DNA of 64,000 nucleotides from Perna viridis (Eukaryota), in the NCBI GenBank assembly GCA_037379345.1, contig CM074511.1, positions 51,466,862-51,530,861 of the forward strand, given 5' to 3'. Each line of letters begins with the position of its first letter. The first letter of the stretch is position 1. A model generated the notes under the pieces. The model worked only from the letters and a program-made list of their open reading frames with translations. It was not told the origin of the DNA and searched no databases. The translations under genes and the position numbers were made by a program. This document shows positions 49,901 to 52,900 of this stretch, in pieces.

Positions 49901-52900
49901 AGATTTTTTAACTTTTATACACTGAACAAGATTTAATAGTCTTTTTCATTTCTTTACTTTCGAAATCTACATGTATCATATTCATGTTGCATGTGCACAG
50001 GTGATACCTAAGGGACTTGAGGGTCATCCAAAGAGATAGAAAAAATATAAAAGTCTAGGACTTAGACTGCAATTAATTAAAACCAAAAAAAAATTTGCAT
50101 AAATATATCATTAATGCTATTCCAACAGTTATGAAGCTGTAATAATAATAATAACTAAAAATGACATTTTTGATCAATTTAATATACTACACATTAAGAA
50201 ATCAAAACTCTGATGCCTTACCCTTGACACTGGAGATTTTCTCAAATTAGCCTTCAAAATCTGTACACGTGACTTGAGATCTGGTAGCGGAATGTAAATC
50301 AGCTGATCAAGACGTCCAGGTCTCAAAATGGCAGGATCAATAATATCAGGTCTGTAATATTAACAAATCAAACCATTTGGTTGAAATAATGCTTTATAAA
50401 AGATAGTGACTCACTTTAGAATGTGTACTTATCATATTAAGTAAAAAAATTGTCACACACAAATATTAATCATAATTATACTGAGGTATTGTACATTTGT
50501 AGTCATAAGCTTTTCTATTTAAAGACCACAAAAGCATGAAATTCACAGGTTTTATTGATTGCTGAAGCATATGCAGTGCAGCAGAAAAGGGCAGTAATAT
50601 TTACCTGTTAGTTGCACCAATTATGAAGACATTTTTCTTTGCACTCATACCATCCATTTCTGTCAGAAGCTGATTAATTACTCTATCAGCAGCACCACCT
50701 AAAAGTAAAAAGTAAACCCATTAAATAAACTCCATTTGCAAATGATAAGGCAATGAACAGTCTAACCAAATGATTCAGTTTCAGGAAAATGTTAATCAGA
50801 GCCCTTTTCAACCTTACTTTATGATAGCTGAATAGAATGCAAACTGAACTCAGGTATTGCCAATAGGAAATATATAGCAAAGCCTAAAGCAAACATTCCC
50901 AAAACAATCAATGGACGGTTAGTTAACCTAATCCAAATTCAAAACAGCTAGACCTTGTTGCATCTAACATATTAACAATGGATAGAACTTTTATATTTCT
51001 CTGCAGGATATGAAGTTAAGCACTGATAGAATAATAATACATAAAAGAATATCTGCCAACAATATGGTGCTCCCAAAGGTGCAGCTTGATACAAAAAAAG
51101 CCTTTAAATCATGATAGTTGGAACAATATGGAGAATATATTCATGCTTTACACATCTCTTATTGTGGTTACTGCTAAAATATTTGACATGACCCAGAATG
51201 AATCTGGTAAATAACCTAATTTTTTTTTAATGTTTAGAATTATGGTCTAAACAATTATGAATTCTCAGATTCGGCATAAAAACAAGAATTTAAATAACTT
51301 GAATTTTGGGCTCTCTGAACCCTTACTTATAATAACTTCTGTAAATAAAATCTGACTTCACGAAGAAACCCAAGAAGTAAAGATTTTAAATTAAACCCCA
51401 TTGAATCTAGTATGATATTAAGCAATTTATACTAATTTCTTAAAATACATGTCCCCGGCCACTTTTTTCCATATTAATTCCACCCTTCCTTTTGAAGTAC
51501 ATGTACTGAATATTGAATACCTATTTCATCAAAATTCACTCACTTCTACAAAAATTTAACATTGTAAACTTTTTGTTATAAGCTCTTTTAAGAACAGAAC
51601 CATAGAAAAGTAAAAATCATGCAAAAATCTTTTTGCAGAGAAAACATGGATGAATATTGTGTACATCAGGCAAAATATTGATGTGAATTTGGAGCTGTCA
51701 ATGAACTTTTCCTGATGCAACCACATCTAACAAAATGGTGCATCAACGACTTACCTCCATCACCACTGTTTCCACCTCTAGCTTTAGCTATGGAATCTAA
51801 CTCATCAAAGAACAATACACAAGGGGCAGCTGACCTAGCCTGAAGTTTATATCCATTTAATGTTAGTAATTAGTAGCTTTAGCTTCATTTTGGACAATAG
51901 AGAAGAAAGGATAAGACCTTAAGAATTAAACATGGAGTAAATTTCTAAAATGTGGTTTTTTTTTTAGAATATAAAGATTCCAAAATCTTTAGTTTATTAG
52001 ATGCCATTTGGGTTAGTTAATATATGCAAAATCTCTATTTAAAAAGGAGTTAAGTATTTTTCAAAAACCAATATAGAAAATCCATTTTTCACCTAAGAAA
52101 AAATGAACTATGTTGATATTTTGGTCTTATCCTTTCTTCCACCATGCAGCATGAACACATACATGTAGCAACCAGACAAAAGGAATATCAGCACCGTACA
52201 GCATGGCTAGTTAACCAAGCTACACACGTACCTCCATCTCCAACATTGCCTCCTCTAGACTTAGCTATGGAGTCTAACTCATCAAAGAACAGGACACAAG
52301 GTGCTGCCTGCCTTGCCTGACAAGTTACAACATACAAATTACATAATTTATCAAAAATTATTTAACTAGTTTAATGTGGTTGGTGCCATTGGAGAAGCAG
52401 GATATGCTTACCCTTCTTGATAAGATACTTGCACCTGATATCACTCTCAATTTTTTTTTTTTTTGGCGGGGGGGGGGGGAGTTCACATTGCAAGAGCTTT
52501 TTCCTTCAACTCAGTTTTTATATGTTATTGTATATTTTCTGTTTGTTACACTGCCTATGTGGATCATCTCTGTTTCCTGTTTTCATGTTTAGGCCAAGTG
52601 CTTAGAGTTTGAAATCTGTAAACTGTTGTTCTATTTTTTATGCTTTGATATTTTTAAGCTGATATTTATTTAACGTCATGAAAACATAGTACTACACCTG
52701 ATCTAAGAAATAGCATTATTTTGTCTTTTTCAAAAATAGTTATGATTAAACTTTTACGAAAAAATATGCTTGGATGACTAAATAGCATTAGCATGTTACA
52801 AGAGGACACTTTCCATAATGCATGGCTTTCAATTGTATAATTTATTCACAACAGGTGCTTGTATCATTTGTGAGATAAAAATTAAAGCAGTATTTCTTTA

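Follow-up and report, generated by a model that had tools for sequence, protein, structure and literature searches.

The stretch of DNA considered here (the window) comprises 64,000 nucleotides of contig CM074511.1 from Perna viridis, and all positions are counted from its first letter. Its minus strand carries a p97/VCP gene spanning ~63100 to 46900, in which 15 exon matches cover residues 36–801 of the VCP from Mytilus californianus with 87–100% identity. The gene encodes an N domain and the two AAA modules D1 and D2 and is by this composition a p97/VCP/CDC48 gene (type II AAA+ ATPase). The P. viridis genome has one such gene: the stretch with the exon pair described below occurs once in the 723-Mb assembly, and a search with the upstream D2 exon gives one VCP-grade match genome-wide (100% identity), the runners-up being 38–56% identical.

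Within the D2-encoding part of the gene, two alternative exons lie between two constitutive ones. The upstream constitutive exon (53038..53250, minus strand) encodes the D2 Walker A region (YPVEHPEKF...REIFDK), ends in phase 0 at a gtaagt donor and is in protein sequence 100% identical to its counterpart in M. californianus. It is followed by exon A (52232..52316, minus strand; acceptor tcag, donor gtacgt) and exon B (51755..51839, minus strand; acceptor ttcag, donor gtaagt), both of 85 nt and both running from phase 0 to phase 1. In a preliminary description of this DNA, two intact 85-nt exons of the same phase with canonical splice sites had been claimed, and they were found exactly at the positions given there. 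The downstream constitutive exon (50605..50698, minus strand), which continues with (G)GAADRVINQ, is 94 nt long; its 3′ end at 50605, read from RNA joints and loose contig ends, is a small correction beyond the coordinates of that description.

Exons A and B are identical in 68 of 85 nt and in 25 of 28 residues. At the 17 differing nucleotides, 11 codons change synonymously and 3 residues are replaced (exon positions 3, 20, and 25), so that direct comparison reproduces the divergence reported earlier. In human numbering, exon A has Q568, S585, and V590 where exon B has S568, A585, and S590, and no other residue differs. The two exons are thus adjacent, homologous, and equal in length and phase, as is characteristic of a mutually exclusive pair that arose by tandem duplication. 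A C run followed by an A run precedes exon A in its upstream intron (52439-52483); it is flagged as a skipped repeat, and both RNA and DNA contigs break there.

Reading frame and use of the exons in mRNA

The length of the two exons locks the reading frame. When exon A is followed by exon B, a TAG comes directly after the junction codon, and when both are skipped, a stop is reached after six codons. The frame shift predicted for the inclusion of both exons or of neither can therefore be read from the sequence, and mRNAs coding for p97 are limited to those with A only or with B only. The frameshifted products, if made, would be removed by nonsense-mediated decay. Exon B begins with GCTAGR in the window, in the M. 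californianus locus (L014), and in a mussel-like metagenome contig (L009), which places an out-of-frame TAG at bases 2–4 (window 51835-51839). Exon A begins with GCAAGR; in other bivalves, where the exon is single copy, the same arginine is encoded by CGN. The presence of the TAG in exon B could reflect chance.

Which of these forms occur was read from the contigs of four runs (out of 20 with the stretch; four studies, two organism labels) that were placed on window:50550-53300. The depth of these contigs ranges in exons from tens to about 1,700 and is mostly in the hundreds, versus about 10 in introns, and loose contig ends fall at the outer exon borders, both of which identify the four runs as RNA assemblies. 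It should be noted that the evidence consists of assembled contigs rather than raw reads, in which rare variants are dropped and from which depth gives ratios only roughly. The joint from the upstream exon to A (53038->52316) and that from the upstream exon to B (53038->51839) are both present in runs X1, X2, X10, and X13; the joint from A to the downstream exon (52232->50698) is found in X1, X2, and X10, and that from B to the downstream exon (51755->50698) in X10 and X13. In X10 two unitigs of 136 nt each contain a complete form, one downstream-A-upstream and the other downstream-B-upstream. On both sides, A and B are joined to the same constitutive exons. Thus, the four joints bear out the proposal that one or the other exon is used in mRNA, and the case in which only one of them ever appears in transcripts does not apply. 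Neither an A-to-B joint nor an upstream-to-downstream joint is among the joints listed for the contigs of the four runs, from which rare variants would have been dropped.

The proportion of the two forms is not the same in the four runs. As roughly estimated from unitig depth, A:B is about 3:1 in X1, 2.4:1 in X2, 0.8:1 in X10, and under 0.05:1 in X13, the most B-biased run, which bears the other organism label. This suggests that the A:B ratio varies widely between samples, the comparison being one between runs and not between named tissues or conditions.

Distribution, age and constraint of the pair

The searches across species were run exon by exon, and full-length comparisons were made with public proteins. 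The exon-based representative search returned mainly multi-domain AAA proteins and genomic ORF fragments, and a homologue search that started from a protist CDC48 (P0012) had no animals among the matches listed. Genomic ORF fragments matched via the upstream exon led to two metagenome contigs of an animal, L009 and L010, in both of which one exon of type A and then one of type B lie between the upstream and the downstream exon. Both exons are also present in the M. californianus locus. In the orthologous pairs of L014 and L009, A groups with A and B with B. The search across relatives that had been proposed thus finds the pair intact in M. californianus and L009, neither absent nor degenerate there. 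The amino-acid sequence of exon B is the same in the window, M. californianus, and L009, and exon B is closer than exon A to the single-copy exon of oyster and scallop.

Outside the mussels only one copy of the exon was found in each of the loci from Crassostrea, Argopecten, Solemya, the chiton Liolophura, Pomacea, and Lingula. Searching for a degenerate second copy under relaxed settings, in the loci of oyster, scallop, and Solemya, gave none. A further contig (L008, from P0093) ends just past the first exon copy; by its divergence it is not from a mussel, and it is uninformative on this point. Nine fragments (P0102, P0106, P0110, P0115, P0119, P0121, P0125, P0126, and P0132) were left out of the locus look-ups; their exon matches what we take to be the vertebrate exon. 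Among the animals sampled the pair is confined to mytilid mussels.

The question whether the pair is annotated elsewhere, which the preliminary description had left open, can be answered in the affirmative: the A/B switch is already in the databases, via Mytilus gene models. In RefSeq, VCP ("transitional endoplasmic reticulum ATPase") has isoforms X1 and X2, each of 801 amino acids, for M. californianus, M. edulis, M. galloprovincialis, and M. trossulus (e.g., XP_052102158.1/XP_052102167.1), and the genome-project models CAG2186962/63 and VDI20765/66 from M. edulis and M. galloprovincialis likewise come as both forms. Within each species X1 and X2 differ only at 565 (Q/S), 582 (S/A), and 587 (A/S), which are the sites at which exons A and B differ. 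They are thus the same exon pair as in the window, held as automatic gene models, with the difference that exon A of Mytilus has Ala at site 590 where that of P. viridis has Val. Literature searches on alternative VCP exons found no paper describing the pair.

In two public models, P0397 (CAC5379564.1 from M. coruscus) and P0400 (CAG2186961.1 from M. edulis), the last 14 codons of exon B come after exon A. This fusion has most likely arisen in gene prediction, which the duplicated exon misled; since the M. coruscus model contains A and part of B, M. coruscus has both copies. There are other alternative forms of bivalve VCP. For example, scallop X1/X2 isoforms (P0280/P0403, P0404/P0408, P0409/P0410) differ by an insertion of 8–9 residues upstream of the D2 segment (811/810 versus 802 amino acids), a difference that falls outside the D2 exon, and M. 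californianus VCP X3 has a distinct N-terminus. In the horseshoe crab Limulus polyphemus, VCP X1 and X2 (P0473/P0474; 802 amino acids each) differ only at 354, 373, and 436, a pattern that a further pair of alternative exons, here in the D1/linker part of a chelicerate p97, could explain. In Crassostrea (L011:4529-4825) the phase-0 intron after ...FDK has been lost and the upstream exon is fused with the exon of the alternative type; the intron is kept in scallop, Solemya, chiton, Pomacea, and Lingula. Many animal fragments read FDK followed directly by V, and the V was taken there as the GT of the donor.

The age of the duplication follows from the comparison of the three mussel-type lineages (window, M. 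californianus, and L009). Pairwise differences per 85 nt are 4–5 between exons A, 4–9 between exons B, and 16–21 between A and B. The A-A and B-B differences being smaller than the A-B differences, the duplication is old, as had been proposed, and predates the split of the three lineages. The divergence of A from B equals that of either from the exon of other bivalve orders and, on current sampling, the duplication would be younger than the split from oysters and scallops.

Both copies have been under purifying selection, as inferred earlier from the pattern of differences in the window. Of the 215 4-fold sites in the constitutive exons, 107 differ between P. viridis and M. californianus; these exons have a nucleotide divergence of 14.6% and an amino-acid change in 29 of 627 codons. 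In the same comparison none of the 28 codons of exon B and only 1 of the 28 codons of exon A (V/A at site 590) has such a change. With so few amino-acid changes at ~50% 4-fold divergence, the constraint on A and B is as strong as that on the rest of the gene. Relative to M. californianus, exon A has, moreover, the lowest nucleotide divergence of all exons of the gene, 5.9% (binomial P about 0.011), and this low divergence hints at an extra constraint at the RNA level.

Intronic RNA structures and their likeness to known systems

The introns between exons A and B of the three lineages cannot be aligned apart from one block after the exon A donor. This block contains a conserved hairpin (52191..52231, minus strand) at or just after the 5′ splice site of exon A, with an outer stem UGUAGC/GCUGUA and an inner stem GGYU/AGCC. 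It begins at +4 to +11 of the intron across the three lineages and is predicted both for the window sequence and for the consensus. Its stem positions either do not vary or carry a one-sided change (C-G to U-G), and each lineage has a loop of its own. A metagenome scan with the hairpin pattern gave no matches.

A second structure, a long stem, is formed by a 5′ arm (52123..52140, minus strand) 91 nt past the exon A donor and a 3′ arm (51901..51918, minus strand) 61 nt before the exon B acceptor, with 204 nt looped out between them. In the window it is a perfect inverted repeat of 17 nt (18 bp when one G-U pair is counted); the homologous stems have 12+7 bp in M. californianus and 19 perfect bp in L009. 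When each intron was shuffled 200 times, stems as long as those observed were reached by 0, 0, and 1 of the shuffles in the three lineages (17 bp by 0 of 200 for the window intron), and by the same test the two flanking introns of the window have no stem above chance. The arms share a core in which GAT[A/T]A[T]GAC pairs with GTC[A]T[T/A]ATC. As read from the arm sequences, the stem has compensatory changes: one A:T pair is swapped to T:A between M. californianus and L009, and in the window stem each arm lacks one nucleotide, the two gaps facing each other in the pairing. Since the stem sequence occurs only once in the genome, it does not belong to a repeat family.

The case for a role at the RNA level is conservation in three lineages, from which the hairpin and the long stem are likely parts of the splice switch. 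The choice between A and B, and their ratio, would then be set by the donor-site hairpin together with the stem that loops the intron. The sequence TACTAAC is the branch-point consensus. A motif scan found it at 51862..51868 (minus strand), beginning 29 nt before exon B, and it likely serves as the branch point of this exon; the exact motif is not kept in the other two mussel lineages. Steric hindrance as the mechanism of exclusion is unlikely, since donor and branch point remain ~120 nt apart along the RNA when the stem has formed. A TGCATG of the Rbfox type near exon A was also considered and rejected, because it is not conserved (+83 in the window, +212 in L009, absent in M. californianus).

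Mutually exclusive pairs controlled by RNA structure are known from insect Dscam and 14-3-3 zeta and from human ATE1, where competing intronic pairings are responsible. The mussel p97 pair is like these in that its exons are in tandem and of equal length and phase, in that inclusion of both or neither shifts the frame, and in that there is a conserved intronic pairing. It is unlike the Dscam type in that the long stem lies wholly within the A-B intron. Indeed, a docking/selector arrangement as in Dscam was not found in a search that was not exhaustive for weaker competing partners, and the only strong conserved pairing has both its arms within this intron. In tau exon 10 a stem-loop is located at the donor site; by analogy, the hairpin at the exon A donor would resemble this stem-loop more than a pairing of the Dscam type.

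From molluscs, the literature searched on duplicated or mutually exclusive exons yielded only one case, the alternative oxidase (AOX) of the oyster Crassostrea virginica. Exon 10 of this gene is tandemly duplicated and used alternatively, and the variants are proteins of the same size with changes near functional sites, whose ratio shifts under air exposure (PMC5589949). The two cases have in common a bivalve gene with a duplicated exon that is used alternatively. The AOX pair is a terminal exon (3′ alternative splicing), whereas the p97 pair is internal and frame-locked; and stress dependence was measured there for AOX, whereas the p97 pair is known from contigs and sequence comparison.

In the brachiopod Lingula anatina it is the next exon of the VCP gene that is tandemly duplicated (L015:12569-12662 and L015:12962-13055). 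The two copies are intact, have ag/gt sites and differ in 6 of their 30 residues, and RefSeq isoform X3 contains the second of them. By reading of their flanks, each is 94 nt long. With this length the inclusion of both or neither would shift the frame, so that this pair, too, would be frame-locked. It is a different D2 exon, encoding the segment (G)GAADRVIN...IGATN just after that of the mussel exon, and an independent event.

Protein context and interpretation

The alternative exon aligns to residues 566–593 of human p97 in solved structures (E about 1e-16). The sequence FFDELD and an Arg equivalent to R586 (R21 of the exon) are present in both A and B, and the Arg equivalent to R599 is located in the downstream exon (GAADRV). 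In p97, E578 is the Walker B glutamate of D2, ERAD requires R586 and R599 of pore loop 2, and the D2 pore loop 2 (590-IGDGG-594) surrounds the substrate as a channel of roughly 16 Å (PMC10216129). From the positions of R586 and 590-IGDGG-594 it follows that site 585 adjoins R586 and that site 590 opens D2 pore loop 2. The alignment to human p97 agrees with the earlier assignment of the variable sites to 568, 585, and 590, and E578, R586, and 590-IGDGG-594 match the placement of the exon at D2 Walker B and pore loop 2. In mutagenesis, D2 pore loop 2 residues were found not to be essential for unfoldase activity (PMC10216129). Sites 568, 585, and 590 are the labile ones of the segment and vary freely among animals with a single isoform; the peptide of exon A in the window is identical to that of two ascidians. 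For these reasons the difference between A and B at the protein level may be slight.

We consider it very probable that exons A and B are a genuine, expressed, mutually exclusive pair, which arose in the mussel lineage by tandem duplication of the 85-nt exon equivalent to residues 566–593 of the human protein, with frameshifted products that would be lost to nonsense-mediated decay, a choice that would be controlled by RNA structure, and isoforms that may tune the D2 pore or the surroundings of the nucleotide site, alone or in mixed hexamers. That one copy is unused or decaying, or that the pair is an artefact of assembly or of haplotypes, is practically excluded: several independent studies have mRNA with A and with B, three lineages keep the two exons intact and constrained, orthologous pairs are found again in independent assemblies of relatives, and the region is single copy in that of P. 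viridis. That the pair serves mainly dosage control, regulated frameshifted transcripts and their decay tuning the level of p97, would fit with the immediate stops reached when both exons are included and when both are left out, and with the out-of-frame TAG that exon B carries near its 5′ end in all three lineages. It is nevertheless quite improbable, because it leaves the conserved isoform-specific residues unexplained and because no contig with both exons or with neither was seen in the four runs, even though substrates of nonsense-mediated decay are rare and contigs drop rare forms.

More weight has to be given to the alternative that the switch is real and the two proteins are equivalent, each exon being kept for its own splicing regime in a tissue or stage as a case of neutral subfunctionalisation at the RNA level. 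Losing either exon would then strip p97 from the cells that use it. The sites at which A and B differ are evolutionarily labile across animals, the pore loop 2 residues of D2 are reportedly non-essential for unfolding, the A:B ratios are strongly different between samples, and the extra constraint on the nucleotides of exon A and the adjoining intron points to selection at the RNA level; all this speaks for equivalence. Under equivalence one would, however, also expect neutral drift, whereas Q568 and S585 in A and S568, A585, and S590 in B are fixed in three deeply diverged lineages, which, with only three sites involved, is weak evidence. On balance we regard equivalence as possible and yet unlikely. 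Somewhat doubtful, too, is the most far-reaching form of the preferred reading, an expressed pair with tuned isoforms, namely that a switch guided by RNA structure makes two p97 motors with different surroundings of D2 pore loop 2 and Walker B, possibly in mixed hexamers, that would adapt the kinetics of unfolding or ATP hydrolysis to tissue or to stresses such as heat, air exposure, or hypoxia; of the two we would give this one the lesser credence.

The importance of the pair is tempered by the mildness of the amino-acid changes, by its restriction to mytilids among the animals sampled, and by its presence in public gene models. What we believe to be new are the distribution over lineages, the analysis of constraint, the sample-dependent ratios, and the two conserved structures in the intron. 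Few AAA+ motors are as conserved or as well studied as p97/VCP, which is generally taken to be one protein species per gene; in mussels two versions of the D2 Walker B/pore loop 2 segment have both been kept for a very long time and are expressed in ratios that depend on the sample. The two exons provide ready-made variants with which the role of D2 pore loop 2, left open by earlier work (PMC10216129), can be probed. With p97 a core enzyme of proteostasis joins the bivalve genes diversified by duplicated exons and, should the two mussel motors indeed be adapted to tissue or stress, the independent duplication of the neighbouring exon in Lingula would mark this part of the D2 ring as a recurrent target of isoform diversification, in an enzyme usually regarded as invariant.
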